Positions 368 to 35,400 of a DNA stretch of 64,000 nt are shown here, in pieces. The stretch is from NCBI RefSeq assembly GCF_000315625.1, contig NW_005434614.1, positions 269,219-333,218 on the forward strand, read 5' to 3'. The notes under the pieces were generated by a model. It was not told the DNA's origin, did not search any database, and saw only the letters and a list, made by a program, of their open reading frames with translations. The translations under genes and the position numbers were made by a program. Each line of letters starts with the position of its first letter. Position 1 is the stretch's first letter. This stretch comes from Guillardia theta CCMP2712 (Eukaryota; Protista; Cryptophyta).

Positions 368-3300
368 ATGTCGAGGACAGCGAGAGACTATCGCAAACCA
401 GCGGACTCGTCTCGGTCAGCCTCAAAACTTTTCGATGGGTTTCAATCTCCATCTTGGGACCCTGCTGTCTCTTCGCTTGATGTTTCCGGCGAGCACTCAG
501 GGTCTTCCAGCAAGATGTACGTCTCTGTGCTTGGTCTTTTCTCCTCCCGATCGACCTTTCACCTCAGGCTTGCGTTGCTGTACGAGGAGCGGGAGGAGAA
601 GCGGCGGCTGCTGCACTTGATGAGGTCAGCAGGAAGTGAAGGCGGTAGCCTGCAAAGATCCGACTCGTCTCGCACCCAACGACATCCCTTGTGGTCCAAG
701 ACCCCCCGGTCGAGCGCTCTCGAAGATCCTCCCTCGACCCCGCAAGACTCAGTGGTAGCCTACGAATTTTGACGCAGTCGTGCTGATGGATCTGTCCACA
801 GAGGAATGGCGACGCTGAGGGCGGAGGCTTCGGCTTCCCCAATCGAATCCTCTCTCTCTTTTCCACCTCCAAGAATTCGGACAGCATCAACCGCCAAGAC
901 CCATCGACCGGTATGATGACCTTGATGTTTCCCTCTGTACCGTGAAGGCTGTATCTAGGTACCAACATGGAGGACCTGGGCAAGAAGTACTTCAAGTTCA
1001 GGAACAAGAGTGACCATGCCGACGACGAGCTTGAAGCAGCTTTGAGCCAAGTAGAAGTGCTTCAGCAGGTGGACGCGCTGATCTCGAATGATTTTTTGGT
1101 CGCTCATCTTTGAAGCAGGTCCAGGCGAAACTTGAGAAAGCGCTAGAAGAGGAGCGACGCCAGTCGTTGAGGAAAGACTATCAAATCAACGACCTGAAAC
1201 GTGAGCCTTGCTCGGCAAGCCCCTCACCGCTGACAAGCTTCCCTCTAGGTGAGAGGAAGCTGCTAGTGGACAAATGCGTCAGCCTGGGATCAGGAGCAGC
1301 AGACTCTCGCTCTGGCGACAGTCTTCTGACGCCTGCGAAGACCAACGTGAATGATCCTGGCATGTTGCACTCGCAGCAAGTCCAACGAGATAACCAAAAC
1401 AAATCAATAGCCGACAATTTTGAATTGAGAAGACCGAATAAGGATCAGCTTGATCTTGAGGCAGCGTTGAAGCATATTCAGGACTTAGAAGCAGCTCTGA
1501 GTCAAGAAAGGAAGGAGAAGGATCATGCCATTGAGAGACAGATTCAACTTCAGAAGATTGTCTCGCAAAATGTCTCCCTGATCAAAGAAGATACAATCAA
1601 GGCTAAACAAGGAGCAAGAGAGCAAAGCAATGCCAGCCCCAAACAAACCTCAACTCCCAGCTTTTCACTACATTCCGCCCTTACCCAAGAGAAATATTTA
1701 CATGAAGAGCTAGGGAAAGCTAAAGAAGAAATGAAAAAACTCAATGAGGAGTTGCAGAAAAAAGAACTAATGGTTTCTGAGCAACGCAAGGAAATTGAGC
1801 GATTGAAGGCCGACATGAAAAATCTCGATACTGATTCCAAGAATTCAATGGAAAAAACTTTGCTGTATCATACAGAAGAATTGAAAAAACTTCAAGACGA
1901 AACGACAAACAGCAAGAGGCAAAGAAATGAAGAAAACGAGCGACATCAACAAGAGGTGAAGGCTCTACAAGCGCAGCTGGAGGCGGCAAGGAAGGAGGCA
2001 GGCCAGGCAGAGAAGAGCAAGGATGAGAAGACAGCCGAGCTGGAGAAGGCTGTAGCGGCGGCACAATCGAGTGCGAAGGAGGCGGAAGCGACGAAGAACG
2101 CGATTGCGCTGGATCTTGAGGAGGCGATGACAGCGCTCAAGTCTCTACACCTGGCGATCTGCCGTCAGGGACCAGCTCCGGCAGTGGGAGGGATCGGAGT
2201 AGCGCTGGGGACGGAGACGATGAAGCTGCAAGGGAAGTCAAGGAAGGTGGTGAAGATCAACCAGATGGCGACGACGGGACCCGCAGCTCAGAGCGGGGCG
2301 GTGAAGGTAGGAGACGTGATCCTGGAGCTAGACGGGCGAGACGTGACATCGCTGGACGTGAAGTCGGTGAAGGAGCTGACCAAGGGAGTGACGGGATCGC
2401 CGCTGCGGCTCAAGGTGCTTCGAGGAGGGGCAGCGCACGACGTGGTGATCCGGAGGTCAGACCTGGTGTCTGGGTCACTGCCAGCAAGCAGCGATGCTGG
2501 GAGCTCAGTCGGGGGCTCGAGCGGGGCTATGCCTCAAGGGGGAGCAGGGAGAGAGCCAAGCGCGTCAGAGAGGGGCAAGGAGGGATGCGAGGCGGCGGCG
2601 GTGCTGTACGAGGAGCTGGAGAAGCTCCGCGCGGGAGTAGAAGCGTCGGCGAAGGAGCTGAGCGACGCGCGGGAGGAGCTGAGCAAGGCTCGGGAGCAGG
2701 GAGCAGCAGGAGAAGGGAAAGCAGCGAGCCTGGAGCGGGAGGCAGAGGCAGCGAAGGCAGAGCTGGAGAAGGCAGCAGGGAGGGCGCGGAGCCTTGAGGA
2801 GGAGGTGAAGGCTCTACAAGCGCAGCTGGAGGCGGCAAGGAAGGAGGCAGGCCAGGCAGAGAAGAGCAAGGATGAGAAGACAGCCGAGCTGGAGAAGGCT
2901 GTAGCGGCGGCACAATCGAGTGCGAAGGAGGCGGAAGCGACGAAGAACGCGATTGCGCTGGATCTTGAGGAGGCGATGACAGCGCTCAAGTCTCTACACC
3001 TGGCGATCTGCCGTCAGGGACCAGCTCCGGCAGTGGGAGGGATCGGAGTAGCGCTGGGGACGGAGACGATGAAGCTGCAAGGGAAGTCAAGGAAGGTGGT
3101 GAAGATCAACCAGATGGCGACGACGGGACCCGCAGCTCAGAGCGGGGCGGTGAAGGTAGGAGACGTGATCCTGGAGCTAGACGGGCGAGACGTGACATCG
3201 CTGGACGTGAAGTCGGTGAAGGAGCTGACCAAGGGAGTGACGGGATCGCCGCTGCGGCTCAAGGTGCTTCGAGGAGGGGCAGCGCACGACGTGGTGATCC

Positions 3301-6300
3301 GGAGGTCAGACCTGGTGTCTGGGTCACTGCCAGCAAGCAGCGACGCTGGGAGCTCAGTCGGGGGCTCGAGCGGGGCTATGCCTCAAGGGGGAGCAGGGAG
3401 AGAGCCAAGCGCGTCAGAGAGGGGCAAGGAGGGATGCGAGGCGGCGGCGGTGCTGTACGAGGAGCTGGAGAAGCTCCGCGCGGGAGTAGAAGCGTCGGCG
3501 AAGGAGCTGAGCGACGCGCGGGAGGAGCTGAGCAAGGCTCGGGAGCAGGGAGCAGCAGGAGAAGGGAAAGCAGCGAGCCTGGAGCGGGAGGCAGAGGCAG
3601 CGAAGGCAGAGCTGGAGAAGGCAGCAGGGAGGGCGCGGAGCCTTGAGGAGGAGGTGAAGGCTCTACAAGCGCAGCTGGAGGCGGCAAGGAAGGAGGCAGG
3701 CCAGGCAGAGAAGAGCAAGGATGAGAAGACAGCCGAGCTGGAGAAGGCTGTAGCGGCGGCACAATCGAGTGCGAAGGAGGCGGAAGCGACGAAGAACGCG
3801 ATTGCGCTGGATCTTGAGGAGGCGATGACAGCGCTCAAGTCTCTACACCTGGCGATCTGCCGTCAGGGACCAGCTCCGGCAGTGGGAGGGATCGGAGTAG
3901 CGCTGGGGACGGAGACGATGAAGCTGCAAGGGAAGTCAAGGAAGGTGGTGAAGATCAACCAGATGGCGACGACGGGACCCGCAGCTCAGAGCGGGGCGGT
4001 GAAGGTAGGAGACGTGATCCTGGAGCTAGACGGGCGAGACGTGACATCGCTGGACGTGAAGTCGGTGAAGGAGCTGACCAAGGGAGTGACGGGATCGCCG
4101 CTGCGGCTCAAGGTGCTTCGAGGAGGGGCAGCGCACGACGTGGTGATCCGGAGGTCAGACCTGGTGTCTGGGTCACTGCCAGCAAGCAGCGATGCTGGGA
4201 GCTCAGTCGGGGGCTCGAGCGGGGCTATGCCTCAAGGGGGAGCAGGGAGAGAGCCAAGCGCGTCAGAGAGGGGCAAGGAGGGATGCGAGGCGGCGGCGGT
4301 GCTGTACGAGGAGCTGGAGAAGCTCCGCGCGGGAGTAGAAGCGTCGGCGAAGGAGCTGAGCGACGCGCGGGAGGAGCTGAGCAAGGCTCGGGAGCAGGGA
4401 GCAGCAGGAGAAGGGAAAGCAGCGAGCCTGGAGCGGGAGGCAGAGGCAGCGAAGGCAGAGCTGGAGAAGGCAGCAGGGAGGGCGCGGAGCCTTGAGGAGG
4501 AGGTGAAGGCTCTACAAGCGCAGCTGGAGGCGGCAAGGAAGGAGGCAGGCCAGGCAGAGAAGAGCAAGGATGAGAAGACAGCCGAGCTGGAGAAGGCTGT
4601 AGCGGCGGCACAATTGAGTGCGAAGGAGGCGGAAGCGACGAAGAACGCGATTGCGCTGGATCTTGAGGAGGCGATGACAGCGCTCAAGTCTCTACACCTG
4701 GCGATCTGCCGTCAGGGACCAGCTCCGGCAGTGGGAGGGATCGGAGTAGCGCTGGGGACGGAGACGATGAAGCTGCAAGGGAAGTCAAGGAAGGTGGTGA
4801 AGATCAACCAGATGGCGACGACGGGACCCGCAGCTCAGAGCGGGGCGGTGAAGGTAGGAGACGTGATCCTGGAGCTAGACGGGCGAGACGTGACATCGCT
4901 GGACGTGAAGTCGGTGAAGGAGCTGACCAAGGGAGTGACGGGATCGCCGCTGCGGCTCAAGGTGCTTCGAGGAGGGGCAGCGCACGACGTGGTGATCCGG
5001 AGGTCAGACCTGGTGTCTGGGTCACTGCCAGCAAGCAGCGACGCTGGGAGCTCAGTCGGGGGCTCGAGCGGGGCTATGCCTCAAGGGGGAGCAGGGAGAG
5101 AGCCAAGCGCGTCAGAGAGGGGCAAGGAGGGATGCGAGGCGGCGGCGGTGCTGTACGAGGAGCTGGAGAAGCTCCGCGCGGGAGTAGAAGCGTCGGCGAA
5201 GGAGCTGAGCGACGCGCGGGAGGAGCTGAGCAAGGCTCGGGAGCAGGGAGCAGCAGGAGAAGGGAAAGCAGCGAGCCTGGAGCGGGAGGCAGAGGCAGCG
5301 AAGGCAGAGCTGGAGAAGGCAGCAGGGAGGGCGCGGAGCCTTGAGGAGGAGGTGAAGGCTCTACAAGCGCAGCTGGAGGCGGCAAGGAAGGAGGCAGGCC
5401 AGGCAGAGAAGAGCAAGGATGAGAAGACAGCCGAGCTGGAGAAGGCTGTTGTTCGTGTACAGAAAGAAATGAGCTCTTGCTTTTCGATGTCTATCTCTCA
5501 GCTTAAGTCTTCTTTCCAGTCGATCGTCTCATCCTTGTTCTCGAAGGCACTCATGTTGGAACAGGAAGTAGATCTGATTGCCAGGCAGTACCATGAGGAG
5601 AGAAGCTGCTTTTCGACAGGACAGAAGAATTTGGAAGATGCGAATGCAAGATGTGAAGAGTTGACAGCGAGGTGTGAGAGACTGGAGGACTTGCTGCGGG
5701 TTTCCGATGCAGCGAAGCGAGAGCTTGAGGCTCAGGTCAATGCCAAGGAGGAGAAAGTGGAGGCGTTGGCTAAGGAGATAGAGAATGCCAAGTCGTTGGC
5801 CAAGAAACTTGCATCCTCGCACAAAGAGGGCAACCAAGCAGTTCGGCAACTGGAAAGTGACAAGGCGGGGGCTGAAGAGAAGTTGAACAAGCTCCAAGCA
5901 GAGTACGAGGAGTTACAGAAAGAAGCGAGTTCAAGGCAGGCAGGATTGGAGGCCGAGGTTGAGAGTCTTGGAGGGAAGCTGTCGAGGCTTGAGGCGCACT
6001 GCGAGGAGACGGAGCAGCAGCTTCGCGAGTCTCATGACAAGTTTTCGCGGGTCTCTCTTGACCTGGGCGAAACCATGAAAGCGCTGACTAGTCTGCACGC
6101 GACGATCGCCGAGGCGGAGGAGAGAGCTCTGGGAGGCATCGGAGTTGCGATCTCTCAAGGTCAAGAGGAGGAGCCGGTCAAGATCTGTCAAATTGCTCCT
6201 GGGAGTCCAGCGGCAGAGAGCGAGCGGGTGAAAGCAGGAGATGTCATTCTCAGCTTGGACGGGATCCAAGTCGCTCAGCTCGGGGTCCGCAGGATTCGGC

Positions 6301-7145
6301 AGATGATCAAGGGCCCAGTCGGTTCACCGCTCACGATCAAGTGCAGGGCTGGGGACCGTGACGAGGAGTACCAAGTGACTTTACAGCGTTATATCCCCAC
6401 CGGCGACACTTCAGGCCAGCAGGCGGTGGAGCTGATGAGCAAGTCTGGGTGCGAGACGGTCAAGAAGCTAGTCAAGGAGATGGAGGCTCTGCGTGAGCTC
6501 GCCTTGCAGGATGACACAGCTGCTGGTGCGAGGCACGGGCTGCTCGCGTTGACGGCTGAGCAGGAGAGTCTGAAGCACAAGATCCAACTCTGCCTGCAGT
6601 TGTTGGAGGGCACGAAGACTTGGCTGCACGCGTCGCACCCCAAGGACAGTGAGATAGCGCGACGAGCTGCCTTGGAGAACAGCGAGCTTCTCCGCATCCT
6701 CCAGGACGTCAGCTCAGAAGCAGCTGAGGGCGACGAGGCGAGGTCGGTCGTGTCGGACACCAGCTTGACCTCTGCCGCTACCAACACCTCAGCTGGCCGC
6801 ATGTGCGGTGTTGGTATGCGAGTGACGAACTCGACGCCCCATCGCGTCGTCTCCTTCCTGCCCCACGGGCCCGTCGGTCGCTCTGGCCAGGTGAAGGTTG
6901 GAGACTTCCTGGTCGCCATCGATGGCGAGTCTATAGTGAACAAGAGCATCAAAGAAGTTCGGAGGATGATGACGGGAGTCGAGGGCTCCGAAGTTGAGAT
7001 CAAGTTCGCGTCTACTAAGAATGGTGAGCAGTCGACATACTCGGTCACAATAGTACGCGAACAGCCGGTTGCTACCGGTAAGTGAGGAGGTAAGAGAGTG
7101 CGGGAGCACTCTGCGGAGTCGAGCTTGACAGGCTACTTGAAGTAA
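368..7145 (+). CDS. Large coiled-coil protein with six PDZ domains (multi-exon; main exon inside ORF 1110..7085)
   Basis: The PDZ signature GGIGVAL...GPAAQSGAVKVGDVILELDG...GSPLRLKVLR occurs four times. Two divergent PDZs follow (GGIGVAI...GSPAAESERVKAGDVILSLDG; CGVGMRV...GQVKVGDFLVAIDG), separated by E/K/A heptad-rich segments. Probable ATG at 368, with short introns (e.g. 517-567, 1201-1248). A last intron from GTAAGT at 7077 to 7131 gives the C-terminus ...ATGYLK* at 7145. Confidence 0.85.
1953..5449 (+). repeat. Coding tandem repeat, 849-bp (283-aa) unit x ~4.1, each unit coiled-coil plus PDZ
   Basis: GAGGTGAAGGCTCTACAAGCG starts at 1953, 2802, 3651, 4500 and 5349. Only two variable positions were noticed. 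Confidence 0.97.
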
Positions 7146-10848: not shown

Positions 10849-11234
10849 GGATCCGATGATCCGATGAGGCGGGCCTGTTCTTCGAGTTCAGTGACGCGAC
10901 CGGGACCGGGAGACTGACGGCCCGGCCCGTCACTGAGAGTCATAAAAATCGCCCAACCGGAAACTTCCGAAACAGTCCAGTTCCTATGACCTCCCTAGGA
11001 GCCCCCTAGACCGTACTAGGACCTGAAAAGGACAGTACGGAGGCAATTTTAGGACTACCCTACCCCCACTATGACCAGACATTGGACCCCCTTTCGGGGA
11101 GGCATATCCTCAAATTGTACCCTACCCGTGGTTCCTGGTTTCAACCACCCGTGTGTCATGCCTATGCTGACTTGATGCGTGTGGTAGGGGTCGGAGGGAG
11201 ATGGGAAGAGGGGGAGGGAGAGAGGGGCATGCAA

Positions 11235-11236
<2 letters not shown>

Positions 11237-11265
<29 letters not shown>

Positions 11266-11338
11266 TGTATGTACATGTACGATCTATGTATGTAATGTAT
11301 GTATGCATGTATGTATGCGTGCATGTGGGATCTATGTA
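11237..11338. repeat. (TATG)n microsatellite, degenerate at its 3' end
   Basis: Read directly. Confidence 0.9.
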
Positions 11339-11739
11339 GAGAACGTGTGGAAGATGGATGGGTGGTAATGGACGGGGGACGAAAGGGAGGGGATGGAAGT
11401 GAAAGAAAGGAGCGGAAAGGAGGGATCTGTGGTGAAGGAAGTAAAGCATGAAAGCACCATGTTTGTTTATCAGACAGATCTTTTATTATTGTCTCTGATC
11501 TTTTGGTATTGAAATCGTTTTTTTGTTGTCTATGATTCTTTGGTATTGAAATCGTTTTTTGTTATTGAAATCGTTTTTTTGTTGTCGCTGACCTGGTTCA
11601 TGCAGATGCATATCGTCTGCTGGTTTCAACTTGAGGAACATCTGAGTGCATTACGATGCCACACTGATATGGAAGCCGAGAAGATTCTCTCTGATAGAAC
11701 AGATGAATTTTTGTTTGCTCGAGTCTCCTCCAAGGTACC

Positions 11740-14700
11740 ATGATACGACGGAAATCAAGAGGTGTGCGCTGGTGGATAGCCGCGCTTGTGTGGAGATGTC
11801 TAGGCTTGCAGCTATCCCTTGTGTTCACAGCACAGGTTTCAGCTTCACTCGTGCAGGTCCCACACCCTTCCAAGTGCCTGCCTGCTGCGTTCAACCTCTC
11901 GCGCTGGCCGAAATCCTCTCAGAGACGAAGTCTGACGTACCCCAACGGTTCTGCCGTCAGCGTCAGCCTGCCCTTCGAGTCATGGTCGTCAGCCCGAGTC
12001 TTGGCGCAGATCGCCTTCATCCTCCTGGACGAGGTCATGGACTACCGCACAGTCGTGTGGGATGGCGCTGGTCTCAACTCTGCTCAACCTGTGAACTATG
12101 CAGCCGGTTGCAAGGACCCTGACAGCACAACCTGCACTGTCTCCAACATCCAAGATCCCTTCCTTCACATCACCCTTGAGACCTGGTCGTTCGGAATTCG
12201 TCGAGTCTTCACCTTGCCACGGGACGTGCAGCCTACGCTGATCTCTGTGCTTGACTACAGCACGATCGACTCGTTGTTCATCTGGAACAGCGTCCTGCAG
12301 GCTGGAAAGCAAGATGGAATTGATTTGAACTACTACCAGCTCTACGACGCGAAATACTTTGTGCAGAGCAAATACTTTGACTCCTGGCAGCAACTGCTCA
12401 GTCTCATTCCGCCAGGAACAATCGAGACATGCAGCGAGCTGGATGCAGGAACTTACGCCAACACAAGAGAAGTGGAGACATACGTCAACGTCACTGGCAA
12501 CAACGACACTGCCTGTTTGGACGACAAAGTTTGGTTTTCTCCAGCCTGCCTCATGCTAAATGACACATCGCTGTGCATCCCATTGGTAGCGCAGTACAGC
12601 GTCTACTTGTACATGCAGTTGACCTACTGGCTGGACTTTCCTGTAGCCATGGTGAAGATGAGGGATGGGAAGCAGAAGTTTGATGATGCGTATTACAAGG
12701 TCGTCAAGTCAGGCAAGTTCTTGTTCGGTTGGTATCAGCCCGATGACAATCTGCTGGGGATCAAGGACGACTTCCCTGTCTCCCTCATGCTTCCTCCCTA
12801 CAATGCTCTGGAACAGCTGCACGGAGTGTATAAGACTGGCAACGAGTTCATCAAGCCGAGGAACTACGTGTGGAGGAAGCTGCCATCTGTTGACCCTCAC
12901 GTGACTTTCTTGGCGACCAGCTTGAACCTGTACGATGAGGACATGAACTCGCTAATGGCTGAGAGCGGCAAGATGAAGAATGTCACTTCCGACGTCTACC
13001 TCTCCTCCTGGCACGTGGCCTGCAACTGGGTCAAACAATCGCCTGCGGTGTGGGAGCAGTGGATCCCAGCCATCTGTGCGCCAGGACAGACAGCAGACCC
13101 CACGCTGTCGAACTGTGTGGCTTGTCCAGCTGGGTTCTACTGCGAAGGAGGCATCCAGCTAGCACAAGCCTGTCCCAAGGGCGCTTTCTGCCCTGCTAAC
13201 TCCTCTGCTCCTCAGACTTGCCCGAGCGGTTTGCAGACGACGAGAGACAAGATGACTAAGGAGAGTGATTGTAGCGACTGCACAGGCGACAACTACCTCA
13301 TCAACGGCAAGTGTATGTCGCTGTCAGTCTTGGTGATATCAATCTTCCTTCCTCTTGCTGTCTTTCTACTGTCGTCAGCCAAAATCATGAGGGTGCTTCA
13401 AGAATATTATCTCCCACAGGACGAGAAGCTGTTGATGTCAACGATGGAAGAATTGAGGAGCCAGTTGCTGATCAACAAGAAGTACGGCTTCTACCTCAGC
13501 AACGAGAGCGTCGAGATTTGGGTGGACAAGCAATCTATCACTTGCATTCAGTCGGATGCGATGGAGGCGGCATGCCGGCTGGCTCTCTTTCAAGAGGATT
13601 TCGATCTTTTCTTCTTTGACAACTTTTGCGCCACCTTGTGTCAGGTCGAGCGATACAACTCACAAGAGGAGGAGGGAGAGATCTCCCTGCAGCAGGAGAA
13701 GCTGCGGGAATGGCTCATGTCCATGGCTCTTGTGCTCCTTGACAGAAACAGTCCGGATCAGAGGATACAAACCGAGGATAGAGGAGGCCCAGGATCGACC
13801 GCGGCAGGAGCCTTGTACTTCGCGCAGGATGTGACGGAGACTGCCACGGTGGCGTCAGTCTCGGACGAAGAGCCCGGGGCCCGTCGGTTCCGATTCTTCC
13901 TGGACAAGTTCATCAGGGCCAAGGTCTGGATGGAGGACCAGGAGTTGTTCGAGAGGCTGAGAGAAGCTTGCCGGGAAAACGTGGAGGCGATGAGAGCTGA
14001 CTGCGAAGCGAGGTTCTCTCAGCTCATCAACTCTCCCAGCGGCTCTCGCCTCGAGCAGTTGAGCTGGGACAAGGAGGACAAGCAGATTTTCTCTTCTCCC
14101 AACCCCAGCAGCGAGAGAGGAAGGACCCTTTCCTCTTCGTCGATGGAGTTGAACATGTGGGACAAGTACTCCAGTGGTTTCATGGAAGGAGGAAACAAGA
14201 AGACTCTCCATCTGCTGCGACAGGATTCTTACCAGGTGTCACCGGCCTTCCTCGTCCTCCTCATTTCTCTCCCGCCCAAATCTTCGCCTTGCTCTCGTCC
14301 TCTCCCCTCGCTTTCTCTTCCTGTGGTATTGATCATCTTGTCTAGGTCAGAGCCATCGAGGTGGACGAAGCGAGCAGGATGGAGTCGAGGATCTCCTTCA
14401 ACAAGCTGGCAGAGAGCGGCGAAGTCTCGTGTGTGAGGGAGGACGTATTCATTTCACAGCTCCAGCAGCTCGCCAGCAGGTTAAACTCTGCCTTCCACAA
14501 GGCCATCCTCGACATCATTCTCAAGCACTGCCGCACTCAGATCAGCTCTGGGGTCACTTCCTCTGCTCTCCTGCAGCGCAGGTCCTCTCAGATCTTCTCT
14601 TGCCAGATGCTCCACCGGCAGGGAGAGATTGCCGCCGTCTTCCCCAGCTGCAAGACTGTGAAAAGTATGACAGAGAAGCTCAAAGACTTCGGTCCTCCTC

Positions 14701-15152
14701 ACCCAGCAGCAGTCTGGCCCTTGACCGCCAACGTGCTCGACCCCGTAAGGATGTGCATCATCTGCCAAGACGCAGCAGACATGCTGGAAGTGGTCTCGTG
14801 GCTGGAGGAACACCAGCGGCAGCACTCGGACCTCAAGATCTGTGAGATCGTCAACGGGTTCGGCAAGGAGGAGGGAGGCGCTCGATGGCGCGGGCTGAAG
14901 GTGCTGGTGCTGTTCGAGGACAGGGGAGGGGGGGGAGGGGGAGGGGGGGAAGGGGGAGGAGGAGGAGGAGTAGGATGCCCAGGTCGAGGAGGGGGAGGAG
15001 GGGGGGGAGGAGGCCGCATCATCGGGGAGGTTCAGCTGCAGGATAAAGAGCTCTTCGCTCTCAACTCGAGGATGTGCCGACTTGCGACGATGATTCGGTC
15101 GCCGACTATGGAGGAATACTTGAAGACCCTTGAAGCCGTCGAAGAGCAGTAG
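11740..15152 (+). CDS. Single-pass receptor-like protein (~1100 aa): signal peptide, periplasmic-binding-protein-like domain, GCC2_GCC3-like Cys-rich repeats, TM helix, cytoplasmic RelA/SpoT-synthetase-like nucleotidyltransferase domain
   Basis: Exon 11740-14235, phase-0 intron 14236-14345 and exon 14346-15152 join in frame. The N-terminus is hydrophobic. ESWSSARVLAQIAFILLDEVMDY and WHVACNWVKQSPAVWEQW resemble the ends of ProX/OpuAC-type binding domains. Cys-rich stretch CPAGFYCEGG..CPKGAFCP. TM LSVLVISIFLPLAVFLL. Synthetase-like motifs KTVKSMTEKL / VLDPVRMCII / WRGLKV / IGEVQL. Confidence 0.8.
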
Positions 15153-15267: not shown

Positions 15268-15353
15268 ATGATCATCGCATCATGATGATCATGATGATCA
15301 TCATGTCATGATGATCATCATGAACTTAACTTTCATCATCATCATCGTCATGT

Positions 15354-15388
<35 letters not shown>

Positions 15389-15528
15389 TTGATGATGTTG
15401 ATGATGATGTTGATGTTGATGATGTTGANNNNNNNNNNNNNNNNNNNNNNNNNNNNNNNNNNNNNNNNNNNNNNNNNNNNNNNNNNNNNNNNNNNNNNNN
15501 NNNNNNNNNNNNNNNNNNNNNNNNNNNN

Positions 15529-15619
<91 letters not shown>

Positions 15620-15667
15620 TTGTTGTTGATGATCATGATGATGATGATGATGATCATGTTGATCATC
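15268..15667. repeat. (GAT/ATC)n microsatellite spanning the 100-N gap 15429-15528
   Basis: Read directly. Confidence 0.95.
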
Positions 15668-15894
15668 GAGTCAAGGTCTTTGTCTTTATCCGGGATCAGC
15701 ATTTGGTACCGGGGCGGACTTGGCACCTTCACCTAGGCGGGATGGCAGGAGAAGCAGGCGGTCGAGACGGAGGGAGAGAATAGAGAGGGAGAGAGGAGGA
15801 GAGGAGGAGAGGAGGAGAGAGGAAGGGAGGACAAGGATGAGCCAGATGAGACTAGACAAAGAAGATGGAGGAGGAGATGGGATGTGAATTGAGC

Positions 15895-32138: not shown

Positions 32139-32428
32139 TGTCCTCCAACCTTCATAATGATCCTTCTCACCCTGCCATTTCGCCCTTTCAGTGACGTCCG
32201 TTGAACTTGTCCCTCATCCCCACTCTTGCCCATTCACCCCCTTGACTTTTCTTGTCAAGAGTTTTTTTTCAGCAATGTCAGAGGCTCGGTGGGGGTGGGG
32301 TGGTGAAGATCCATCAGTCTGGATTAATGTGGGGTACTTGAAAGAGAAAAAGAGGGGTTATTGGGGAAGGGGCCTTCTGAGAGTAGGGGTGATGTTAAAA
32401 CTGTTTTAGGTGTCAGTCGGGGAGTGAC

Positions 32429-35400
32429 GATGGCCAGGGGGAACAAAAGAAAAGAGGAGGAGGAGGAGAAGGAGGAGGAGGAGGAGGAGGAGACACTTGG
32501 AGGTCCTTCAGAGTTCAAGGAGGAAGAGAGGTCCAGAAGAAGAGGTGGAAGGAGCAAGATGAGCAATGCTCGGGAGATGAATGAAGAGGGAGACGTTTTC
32601 TCCATGTCTCGGGCCGTCGCGCAAGAACTGTTCTACGCGGTCCGTGAGGTTTGCGGCTTCTCAGTTGAGATCCTCAAAGATTTCGTGAAGAGCGTGAGAG
32701 AAACCCGAAGAGATCTGCTCGTCAACGGCGACAAGGATGACAGATCTCTGCCTGGCATGAGGGTGGGAAGGGAGAAAGACTGGACGCTTAAGAAGACCTT
32801 CTTTGCGTTCTTGGTTGTGCAGATATTGACTTTTTCTCTCTTCGCTGTATTTGCCTGCAAAGAAGCAAACAGAAAGGACATGCTGATCCACCAAATCCGC
32901 AGGGAGGCTGCTGAGCTGGAGAGAAAGCGCAGCTTTGAGGCTGGGCTAAAGAAAGCGTCGGAGCTGGTTGGGGTTCCGAGGGTTGCAGCGGCCCCAGTCA
33001 TCAATCTGCATGAGATCAAGTTCGTTCAGGCGCCAAGTGCTGGACCGTCTCCGAACATGCTCGAGCAGCAAGAGGTGAAAAAGAAGATCTCACAACAAGA
33101 AGCAGGAAGCGTGCTGAACGATAGCATGTGGAACAATAGCTACAGGGAGGTGGCGCAGGATAAGGTTGCTCCTCGATCCGCGACGCTTCCTTCAAATTCA
33201 AACTCAGCCTTGACTCCACGTTCATCGCAACCATCATCACAATCATCATCACAATCGTCACAAGCATCCACCAGCAGTCAAGAACCGCAACCGTATCCGG
33301 ATACACAGCAGGCTGTCAGCTATTCCAGCCCCCAGCAGGCTGTCAGCTATTCCAGCCCCCAACAGGCTGTCAGCTATTCCAGCCCCCAGCAGGCTGTCAG
33401 CTACTCGAACCAAGGGAGCAGCTACACGGGTCAACAGCCAGCAGTCAGTCAGACTACTTTGCCGGAGTTCAGTCAGTTCCGAGGTCAAGTGAAGTTCCGG
33501 CTGGTGGTGCTGACGTGCAACCGCCCGGTCGCTCTCCTCCGCCTACTTACCTCCCTCCTCAACGCTCATTACGACGGCATCCAGGCTGACCTCCACGTCC
33601 ACCAGGACCGGCCTCCCTCCTCCCCTCCCGACGCTCAGACAACGGCGATCGTCGAGTCCTTCACGTGGCCGCACGGGGTCAAGACTCTCCACCAGTGGTC
33701 GACGCACGTCGGCATCCTCGGCAACTGGATCCACTCATGGCAGCCTAACGCGCAGGACGAGAATAAGATCGCAATCTTCCTCGAAGACGATCTCGAGGCT
33801 TCTCCTCACTTCGCCCGCTGGTTTCTCGCCGCTCACCTTCGCTTCCTCTCCGACCCTGCCGTCTCCTGCTTCTCCGCCATGCGCGCGCAGCTCCGGGCCT
33901 CGGATCCTCGGGGGGAAGGCAACCTAGAGAGCACGATGAAGGAAGGGACGACAGTGTTCAAGTACAAGCTGATGGGCACGTGGAGCTTCTCCCCGAAGGC
34001 GAAGGCCTGGAGGGAGTTCCGCGCATGGTTCGAGAGAATGCAGGAGAAGAAGGGCTTCGTCCCGCTGGTGGAGGGCATCATGCCGAGCATGTGGTACCAG
34101 CAGTTCCAGCAGGAGGGAAGAGAGAGCTCGATGTGGGAGATGTGGTTCATCCGATTCATGGAGGAGAGGAAGGAGTTCTGTGTGTACCCCTGGCTGGCTG
34201 GCAGCAAGACGCTCATGGCGAACTGGAGGGAGAAAGGGCTGCACTACCAGGGGGAGGTGGGGAGAGACCATGAACTTCTGCTGGACTGGGACGCGAAGCT
34301 CATCTTCTGGCCCAACATCATCCCTGTCCTCGACTGGGACGGGCAGGAGATAAAAAGCATCATGGATGCGCAACCGCCTCCTCCTCCTCCTCGTTCTCAC
34401 GCTATCTCCTCCCTCTCCTTCCCTGCCCTCCCTCGCCTCCCCGTCGTGACAACCGTGACCTTGCGTCCTCCTCCAGACGTGCTGACGCAGCTGAACTGTG
34501 TGATCGCCAAGGAGGACCTGCTGCTTCGCTCCATGCTTGAGCAGACGATCCGCACGATGCCCTCTGACCTTCTCCTCCTCTTCGTCATCAGCCGCGCCAG
34601 CATGCCTGCCATGCTCTCGTGGATTTGCAACACGGAGAGGATCGAGGGAGTGCACGAGCGAACCCTCGTCCTCGTCCTCAACTCGGAAATGTTCCCCATG
34701 CTTCAGACCAAGAGCCTCCGCATCAAGGTCGTCGCCTACGAGCAGAATGACGTTTCTCCTCACCGCCTCCTACGAGGCTCCCCAGGGCACTCGAGACTGC
34801 AGGCCCTGCGGCTGCGGGCGCTGATAACGGTCCTGACCCTCCATGACAAGGTTCTCTTCACCGAGCCGGACATGGTGTGGATGGAGGCGGTTCCTTCCTC
34901 GCCCTCCCCTGCTCCCTCCGCCATCATCTCCTCCTTCTCTCTCAGAACCGACGCTGACTTGCAGCTCCTTGAGGACGACGAGACCTTCTCGGACCTCGTG
35001 CTCGTCAAGAGCTCCCCGCAAGTCGTCTGCTTCTTCCGCGGCCTCCTGCAGAACATCAGGGAACAGGCCTCCTCCTCCTCCTCCTCCTCCTCCTCCTCCT
35101 CCTCCTCCTCCTCCTCCTCCTCCTCCTCCTCNNNNNNNNNNNNNNNNNNNNNNNNNNNNNNNNNNNNNNNNNNNNNNNNNNNNNNNNNNNNNNNNNNNNN
35201 NNNNNNNNNNNNNNNNNNNNNNNNNNNNNNNNNNNNNNNNNNNNNNNNNNNNNNNNNNNNNNNNNNNNNNNNNNNNNNNNNNNNNNNNNNNNNNNNNNNN
35301 NNNNNNNNNNNNNNNNNNNNNNNNNNNNNNNNNNNNNNNNNNNNNNNNNNNNNNNNNGCATGAAACTTTCATCGCCGGCGCCTTGATCACCAACACGAAG

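Follow-up and report, generated by a model that had tools for sequence, protein, structure and literature searches.

Gene structure

The window analysed here, a stretch of 64,000 nucleotides of nuclear DNA from Guillardia theta CCMP2712, contains at positions 11740-15152 a gene for a protein of about 1100 residues, in which a predicted extracellular solute-binding domain and a domain resembling the synthetases of the RelA/SpoT homologues (RSHs) lie on either side of a single transmembrane helix (Table 1). The best protein match of the product is GUITHDRAFT_112591 (P0001, 1099 aa, 99% identical). A mechanical scan lists two open reading frames at this locus, 11740-14436 and 14361-15152, and both are present. 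A preliminary description of this DNA had joined them into one protein across an intron at 14236-14345, and this is borne out by a spliced contig, a Hanusia transcript and the public gene model. When exons 11740-14235 and 14346-15152 are joined, the reading frame is kept (832 + 268 = 1100 aa). A 226-nt contig of run X2 omits precisely the 110 nt of the intron, which has GT..AG ends; this junction contig is single and of low depth, and the RNA status of X2 is a guess. The public model GUITHDRAFT_112591 has the identical junction, its last 1078 residues being those of the present translation, and the protein P0002, derived from a transcript of Hanusia phi, is continuous across the junction (RQDSYEVRAIEVDEAS). 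In the DNA run X3 the intron is retained (read-through). The junction check in RNA-seq data that had been proposed was thus carried out; the spliced X2 contig crosses the junction, and it is confirmed that both exons belong to a single transcript.

Two models exist for the 5' end. In the public model translation begins at ATG 11703 and a 40-nt intron with GT..AG ends is spliced out; the preliminary description places the start at ATG 11740. Within the segment 11703-11810, the full hydrophobic (h-) region of a signal peptide is given only by ATG 11740, as it is in the paralogues and homologues. Among the reads examined, no read decided between the two start codons; raw RNA-seq reads were taken from one run and amounted to five reads in the 6% that was sampled.

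Layout of the protein

All elements of a single-pass receptor, namely a predicted signal peptide, an ectodomain, one transmembrane helix and a cytosolic output domain, are found in one polypeptide. Such a layout, with about 490 residues outside and about 555 residues inside, corresponds to a type I receptor. The signal peptide, ectodomain, Cys-rich stalk and single transmembrane helix had all been proposed earlier, and they are upheld here by the hydropathy profile, the count of 10 cysteines, the distribution of glycosylation sequons and inspection of the N-terminus. Of the eight N-x-S/T sequons, seven are N-terminal to the transmembrane helix. The signal peptide was judged by eye; signal-peptide-like N-termini also open the paralogues and homologues P0004, P0005, P0007 and P0010. 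As for the stalk, the Pfam family Ephrin_rec_like is matched weakly in the paralogues and significantly in the related receptors P0010 and P0092, and the UniRef name of the protein is 'TNFR-Cys domain-containing'. The juxtamembrane module between the helix and the second exon had no match in Pfam and no match to an ESM Atlas feature.

Table 1. Features of the receptor gene and of related loci in G. theta. Positions are those of the window unless another locus is named; residue numbers refer to the 1100-aa product.
Feature	Position	Strand	Basis or remark
Start codon and predicted signal peptide, aa 1-35 (MIRRKSRGVRWWIAALVWRCLGLQLSLVFTAQVSA)	11740..11844	+	Sequence; start uncertain
Ectodomain, aa 37-446, predicted OpuAC/ProX-class fold (type II, quaternary-amine type)	11848..13077	+	AlphaFold2 and Foldseek
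Cys-rich stalk, aa 447-525, ephrin-receptor-like / TNFR-Cys type	13078..13314	+	Cys count (10 Cys)
Single transmembrane helix, aa 526-546 (MSLSVLVISIFLPLAVFLLSS)	13315..13377	+	Sole hydropathy peak (Kyte-Doolittle 2.6), followed by K/R
Cytoplasmic juxtamembrane module, aa 547-832 (~285 aa)	13378..14235	+	Conserved in paralogues and P0025
Intron, 110 nt, GT..AG	14236..14345	+	Spliced contig X2, public gene model, Hanusia transcript
Exon 2: C-terminal RSH-homologue (small-alarmone-synthetase-like) domain, aa 833-1100, and stop	14346..15152	+	AlphaFold2, Foldseek, sequence bridge
KTVKSMTEKL (K935-x3-S939-x3-K943)	14652..14681	+	Aligned to the ATP-phosphate-binding K-x3-S-x3-K of RelQ (2be3) and SAS2 (6fgk)
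VLDPVRMCII (D964, R967)	14733..14762	+	Aligned to the D of D-x-x-G-x-R in RelQ/SAS2
Degenerate acceptor-side region, EIVNGF and RWRGLKVLV	14844..14909	+	Family R-V-K-N-K-F and G-Y-R-D-L-x-L
RWRGLKVLV	14883-14909	+	Motif position
Poly-Gly low-complexity insert, aa 1025-1056	14922..15017	+	Loop of low model confidence
IGEVQLQD (E1060, Q1062) and MCRLATMIR	15021..15098	+	E-x-Q of RSHs; family M-H-K-L-Y-K-x-K-R
IGEVQLQD	15021-15044	+	Motif position
Residue 939			Family R (97%), here S, the canonical RSH residue
Residue 947			Family Y, here F
Residue 999			Family R (87%), here E
Residue 1001			Family K (95%), here V
Residue 1003			Family K (75%), here G
Residue 1012			Family G (86%), here R
Residue 1013			Family Y (84%), here W
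Residue 1015			Family D (89%), here G
Residue 1072			Family K, here N
Residues 1075-1083			Family M-H-K-L-Y-K-x-K-R, here M-C-R-L-A-T-M-I-R (H, Y and two K, including K1080 and K1082, replaced)
A5 loci (outside the window), two RelA_SpoT-like domains each	L004:1957-5235; L002:1990-5046; L005:5094-8378; L003:2575-5499	-; -; +; -	
Canonical long RSH genes (HD_4 and RelA_SpoT)	G000:C47:131263-132737; G000:C24:131220-132315		

Fold of the ectodomain

Scans of both exons against Pfam and NCBIfam gave nothing at E<=1, and the ectodomain was examined at the level of predicted structure. The AlphaFold2 model of residues 37-446, built with ten aligned homologues, has a predicted local distance difference test (pLDDT) score of 77.9 and a predicted template-modelling (pTM) score of 0.79. 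In a Foldseek search of this model against the Protein Data Bank (PDB), all of the 50 best matches are binding proteins of the OpuAC/ProX class, the best with E 3e-6. They include TmoX with trimethylamine N-oxide (TMAO), DmpX with dimethylsulfoniopropionate (DMSP), ChoX with choline, OpuAC, OpuBC, ProX, EgtU with ergothioneine, and YehZ. The earlier assignment of the ectodomain as a ProX/OpuAC-like, type II periplasmic-binding domain therefore stands at the fold level, and the model supports a bilobed type II fold nearest to the OpuAC/ProX class of solute-binding proteins.

Sequence comparison gave fainter signals. The protein itself does not reach the gathering score of Pfam OpuAC (PF04069), and its homologues P0010 (E 0.0087) and P0008 (E 0.21) match that family below threshold. 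A profile of the ectodomain searched against PDB sequences found the betaine binders 4xz6 and 7yle at E 1-2, amid chance matches to phytochromes. Quaternary-amine binders of this class hold the trimethylammonium or dimethylsulfonium head group of their ligand in an aromatic cage; the ectodomain alignment contains conserved Trp, Tyr and Phe positions.

In the ectodomain homologues P0005, P0006 and P0009, from cryptophytes or metagenomes, the ectodomain is followed by protein kinase domains of the Ser/Thr/Tyr type, and the Cys-rich stalk is also common to them. These facts suggest that the sensor serves conventional receptor architectures too. Weak C-terminal matches in these homologues are to TIR (P0005) and to guanylate cyclase (P0006 and P0009).

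Fold and homology of the C-terminal domain

The preliminary description had assigned the C-terminal domain to the RelA/SpoT synthetases, and the present analysis supports a predicted synthetase fold of this kind by structure prediction, by an ESM Atlas cluster and by a sequence bridge. The AlphaFold2 model of exon 2, made from a 49-sequence alignment, has a pLDDT of 84.6 and a pTM of 0.81, and its confidence is low only in the poly-Gly loop. All of the 50 best Foldseek matches of this model in the PDB are RSH synthetase domains, with RelQ (2be3) at the top (E 1.8e-6); SAS1, RelP, RelSeq, Rel, RelA, CapRel and FaRel2 are among the further matches. The VIA scores were 12.2 for SAS2, 11.8 for RelP, 11.1 for SAS1, and 10.5 for both CapRel and Rel, with lower values for SpoT (9.3) and Tas1 (9.2). 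An ESM Atlas cluster whose members all carry Pfam RelA_SpoT matched the C-terminal domain at TM 0.73, and RelA_SpoT clusters were also among the neighbours of this domain in a protein-language-model search. The model thus has the nucleotidyltransferase fold of RSH synthetase domains.

The sequence bridge is provided by a more distant, membrane-associated subfamily, here called A5, of G. theta open frames of about 1000 residues, each with two copies of the domain and several hydrophobic segments between them. One A5 copy, in the frame L002:1990-5046:-, is recognised by Pfam RelA_SpoT with 35.4 bits against a cut-off of 27 (E 1.5e-8). When the receptor domain family (A4) was compared with A5 by hhalign, the probability was 99.5 and the E-value 3.6e-22. 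Searched against the PDB, A5 matched Tas1 (E 0.001) and SAS2 (E 0.008). Membership of the receptor domain in Pfam RelA_SpoT is therefore reached only transitively, through the A5 paralogue L002:1990-5046:-. The two-copy layout of A5 resembles that of the two-domain XopAD-type effectors mentioned in PMC3482391.

Residues kept and residues replaced

The four motifs listed in the preliminary description, KTVKSMTEKL, VLDPVRMCII, RWRGLKVLV and IGEVQLQD, were all found in that order at the places given in Table 1. Conservation in the family was counted over about 130-245 sequences, depending on the position. The positions conserved at 98-100% are all kept in the present protein: K935 (100%), K943 (98%), D964 and R967 (both 100%, about 245 sequences), N1002 (100%), and E1060 and Q1062 (both 99%). 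In the alignment to RelQ and SAS2, the catalytic Asp, the Glu of E-x-Q and the K-x3-S-x3-K motif are all found, and the spacing of D964-x-x-R967 is that of Tas1. We take D964 to be the equivalent of D264, and E1060 that of E323, in RelSeq; the conserved positions would then presumably include lysines that bind phosphate, the Asp that binds Mg and the catalytic Glu, as in RSH enzymes.

The acceptor side is different. Where RSH enzymes have [RK]-x-K-D-[YF], G-Y-x-S-x-H and H-x-x-Y-K, and where the family consensus retains R-V-K-N-K-F, G-Y-R-D and M-H-K-L-Y-K, the present protein has E-I-V-N-G-F, R-W-R-G and M-C-R-L-A-T, with R1014 kept. In alignment with RSH enzymes, most of these replacements fall on the side of the acceptor nucleotide. 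The preliminary description had proposed a different acceptor substrate or a pseudoenzyme on the basis of Tyr to Trp, His to Lys and the loss of the distal H-x-x-Y. The Tyr to Trp replacement and the lost H-x-x-Y hold, whereas the His to Lys replacement does not set this protein apart, since the residue at that position varies throughout the family. The caution itself was understated, since R999, K1001, K1003, G1012, D1015, K1072, K1080 and K1082 of the family are also replaced.

The replacements are identical in the Hanusia orthologue P0002, which is 66% identical over the C-terminal domain (71% in the search with exon 1), and in the environmental protein P0185 (94%). Since the same replacements are kept across genera, they suggest changed function rather than decay. 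As judged from these residues, the protein would either be active on a different acceptor or be a pseudoenzyme. The poly-Gly insert alone differs among the three proteins, being shorter in P0185 and absent in P0002, and it is absent from the rest of the family. It is a loop of 32 residues encoded by a G-rich microsatellite at 14922-15017, where read-based contigs break.

The family and its sensors

In an exhaustive search of 1.84 billion representatives, a profile built from four cryptophyte sequences matched at least 732 of them at E<=1e-3; 261 of these reached E<=1e-10. A genome profile search of G. theta found about 15 or more close loci of the domain and about 20 weaker matches, and the weaker ones make up A5. 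Among the 20 clusters examined, the named members are all cryptophytes (Guillardia, Hanusia and Geminigera), and the domain is abundant in marine metagenomes. The Atlas taxon labels Ciliophora and Bacillariophyta rest on 2-4 members and are unreliable.

The same architecture, which the preliminary description had proposed to look for in other proteomes, was found in three G. theta paralogues and, with other sensors, in several relatives. An ANF_receptor ectodomain precedes the domain in GUITHDRAFT_110646, GUITHDRAFT_122367, a Geminigera protein and P0092, and in P0168 it does so together with an ephrin-receptor-like stalk. A CHASE domain precedes the cytoplasmic cassette in GUITHDRAFT_162182 and a phosphonate-binding domain precedes the C-terminal domain in P0023; Peripla_BP_6 is also present among the family members. 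At least four kinds of extracellular sensor (OpuAC-like, ANF receptor, CHASE and phosphonate-binding) are thus carried by this cassette. In addition, the juxtamembrane module is common to the present protein and the CHASE receptor (P0025, GUITHDRAFT_162182), with a BLASTP E-value of 1e-15. Of the arguments from context that the RSH-like domain serves as a signalling output, the strongest is that the sensors change while the cytoplasmic module behind them stays the same.

Proposed mechanism and alternative explanations

On balance we consider it probable that the gene encodes a type I single-pass receptor of the plasma membrane, with an OpuAC/ProX-type sensor and an RSH-like output. We infer the ligand, the signalling across the membrane and the pyrophosphokinase or second-messenger output. 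A small extracellular solute, for which betaine, choline, DMSP and TMAO (quaternary amines or sulfonium compounds) are candidates, would close the two lobes of the ectodomain. The stalk and the transmembrane helix would then relay the change to the RSH-like domain in the cytosol, and the receptor would probably do this as a dimer. For the family at large, the prediction is that ATP donates pyrophosphate to the 3'-OH of an acceptor, either a nucleotide or an RNA end, which would give an output of the second-messenger type. The present protein and its Hanusia orthologue keep the ATP/Mg core, and about ten conserved basic or aromatic residues on their acceptor side are replaced. Most likely, this protein uses a different acceptor or serves catalytically intact paralogues as a partner that is regulatory, weakly active or inactive.

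A wider proposal is that these proteins form a class of cell-surface receptors, so far overlooked, in which a cytosolic pyrophosphokinase of the RelA/SpoT type is activated by the binding of an extracellular solute and makes a 3'-pyrophosphorylated nucleotide second messenger, and in which the OpuAC-like members report osmolytes or compounds of algal-bacterial exchange such as betaine, choline and DMSP. We put this forward tentatively and, taken as a whole, regard it as unlikely. The same degree of doubt attaches to the messenger itself, which might be (p)ppGpp, (p)ppApp or a new nucleotide in the cytosol of cryptophytes and other marine eukaryotes.

Several observations weigh against the receptor reading. 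Neither domain of the protein is recognised by Pfam (E<=1), and Pfam RelA_SpoT (PF04607) matches none of the 100 family members scanned at E<=0.01. Direct comparison of the family profile with SAS2 (E 0.42) and RelQ (E 0.93) gives marginal matches, and the homology therefore rests on predicted structure and the transitive bridge; even so, these alignments to 6fgk and 2be3 keep four elements in register, namely K-x3-[SR]-x3-K, the Asp of catalysis, G-Y-R and E-I-Q. TM-scores are also modest (0.35-0.57), owing to hinge differences and inserts. The loss of many family-conserved residues fits inactivity as well as new specificity. Finally, a scan of the G. theta genome found only two canonical RSH genes containing HD_4. 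A hydrolase with HD_4 standing alone, by which a signal in the cytosol might be reset, was not found, and this speaks against simple ppGpp signalling in the cytosol. The two long RSH genes are presumably plastid-type enzymes.

Among the alternatives, the RSH-like domain could be catalytically dead and serve only to bind nucleotides, to dimerise or as a scaffold, for instance in a pair with active paralogues, as is the case for HER3 among the receptor kinases. This explanation overlaps the second branch of the mechanism proposed above. It would account for the replacements R999E, K1001V, K1003G, G1012R, Y1013W, D1015G and K1072N, for those of the distal His, Tyr and two Lys, and for the poly-Gly insert within the domain. 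However, the seven most conserved core positions, including those aligned with the catalytic Asp and Glu, are intact, and the replaced residues are conserved in Guillardia, Hanusia and the environmental relative, which argues for selection of a new state rather than decay. We regard a dead output domain as somewhat unlikely.

Another possibility is a receptor of the immune or cell-death type, in which the RSH-like domain would be a toxic effector similar to Tas1, CapRel or FaRel2 and, on sensing a ligand derived from a pathogen or from danger, would drain ATP into (p)ppApp or pyrophosphorylate tRNA instead of producing a physiological second messenger. The best PDB sequence match of A5 is the type VI secretion system toxin Tas1, which has the same D-x-x-R spacing, and CapRel, Tas1 and FaRel2 are all among the fold matches. 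The family is expanded and variable, and one ectodomain homologue has a weak TIR match. Bacterial toxins are known that use RelA/SpoT-like domains as modules (PMC3482391), and such domains also appear in a list of the N-terminal effector domains of fungal NOD-like receptors (bioRxiv 10.1101/2022.03.16.484565). With the ATP-depleting toxin Tas1 as the closest match and such modules known, an immune or cell-death output is a live rival. The sensors attached to the cassette, however, are solute binders of the nutrient or hormone type, as in receptor cyclases and kinases, and the housekeeping small alarmone synthetases (SASs) outscore the toxins in the fold comparison. We regard a toxic output as distinctly improbable.

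The reading of the locus as two separate genes, a secreted or membrane-anchored binder and a soluble RSH-like protein joined on paper only, for which the two frames of the mechanical scan and the many short stand-alone database relatives of the C-terminal domain could be cited, has practically no probability and is contradicted by the spliced X2 contig and the unbroken Hanusia product, the same unbroken layout being found in the three G. theta paralogues and in the ANF and CHASE receptors, and the short pieces sitting on contigs of 1-3 kb and being probably fragments.

Relation to known systems

For the receptor that we favour, each part has known counterparts. The closest to the output domain are the SAS enzymes RelQ/SAS1 and RelP/SAS2 (5ded, 2be3, 6fgk and 6ewz) and the synthetase domain of Rel, RelA and SpoT. 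The known SAS and long RSH enzymes are soluble, bacterial or plastid proteins regulated by ribosomes, alarmones or transcription, whereas the G. theta domain would lie in the cytosol, at the end of a single-pass receptor of a eukaryote. It also differs from them in an Asp-Arg loop that is two residues shorter, in extra N-terminal helices, in the replaced acceptor-side residues, and in that Pfam RelA_SpoT is blind to it. The toxic relatives, that is, the (p)ppApp synthetase Tas1 (6ox6) and the tRNA pyrophosphokinases CapRel (7ztb) and FaRel2 (8pu4), are secreted effectors or toxin-antitoxin or defence proteins of bacteria and phages, outside any membrane-receptor context.

The proteins of the OpuAC/ProX class (TmoX 4xz6, DmpX 7yle, ChoX 2reg, OpuAC 3l6g, ProX 1r9l and EgtU 7txk) are about 10-14% identical to the ectodomain, which has about 120 extra residues and conserved cysteines of the disulfide type. 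These proteins serve an ABC transporter, whereas the ectodomain is tethered to a transmembrane helix, as in a receptor. The logic would be that of receptor guanylyl cyclases and Venus-flytrap receptor kinases, in which a sensor of the periplasmic-binding type is connected by one transmembrane helix to a cytosolic nucleotide-handling output, and sister proteins of the G. theta family use the ANF_receptor ectodomain, as receptor cyclases do. The output domains, however, are different: the predicted RSH-like domain has a nucleotidyltransferase fold of the Pol-beta type, in contrast to a class III cyclase or a kinase. The likeness is therefore one of analogy and not of homology of the output.

Implications

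Enzymes of the RelA/SpoT type are known from bacteria and plastids, where they are soluble and act in the stress response; that some are toxins of bacteria is a more recent finding. In the present family this fold would form the cytosolic output of eukaryotic single-pass receptors whose extracellular sensors are of at least four kinds. The preliminary description had stated that no characterised example was known, and in agreement with this a search of the full-text literature found no paper with this architecture, no published description of a receptor-linked RSH-like domain and no RelA/SpoT work on Guillardia. The public names of these proteins refer to the TNFR-Cys, ANF or CHASE parts and to nothing else. 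The pairing of an OpuAC/ProX-like sensor with an RSH-fold output in a eukaryotic single-pass receptor is one that we found described nowhere.

If the intact members of the family are active, they would provide a new route from receptor to nucleotide signalling, beside receptor cyclases and receptor kinases, and would place alarmone-like chemistry in the eukaryotic cytosol. The predicted sensor points to compounds of the betaine, choline, DMSP and TMAO type. Such compounds have a central part in marine osmoregulation and in algal-bacterial exchange. Comparison of this derived member with intact paralogues, such as GUITHDRAFT_133234 and GUITHDRAFT_112545, could show how acceptor specificity or regulation by pseudoenzymes evolves.

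Neighbourhood of the gene

Upstream of the receptor gene lies an open frame of 1991 residues (1110-7085, + strand) with at least five PDZ domains (Pfam PDZ_6, E 7.6e-54). Another open frame, of 1000 residues (32361-35363, + strand), has a weak match near its C-terminus to Nucleotid_trans, a family of nucleotide-diphospho-sugar transferases (E 8.4e-5). The receptor gene is flanked by repeats: a (TACATACA)n-like repeat lies upstream at 11055-11450, and an AT-rich microsatellite of the ATG/ATC type together with an assembly gap (a run of N) lies just downstream at 15300-15740.

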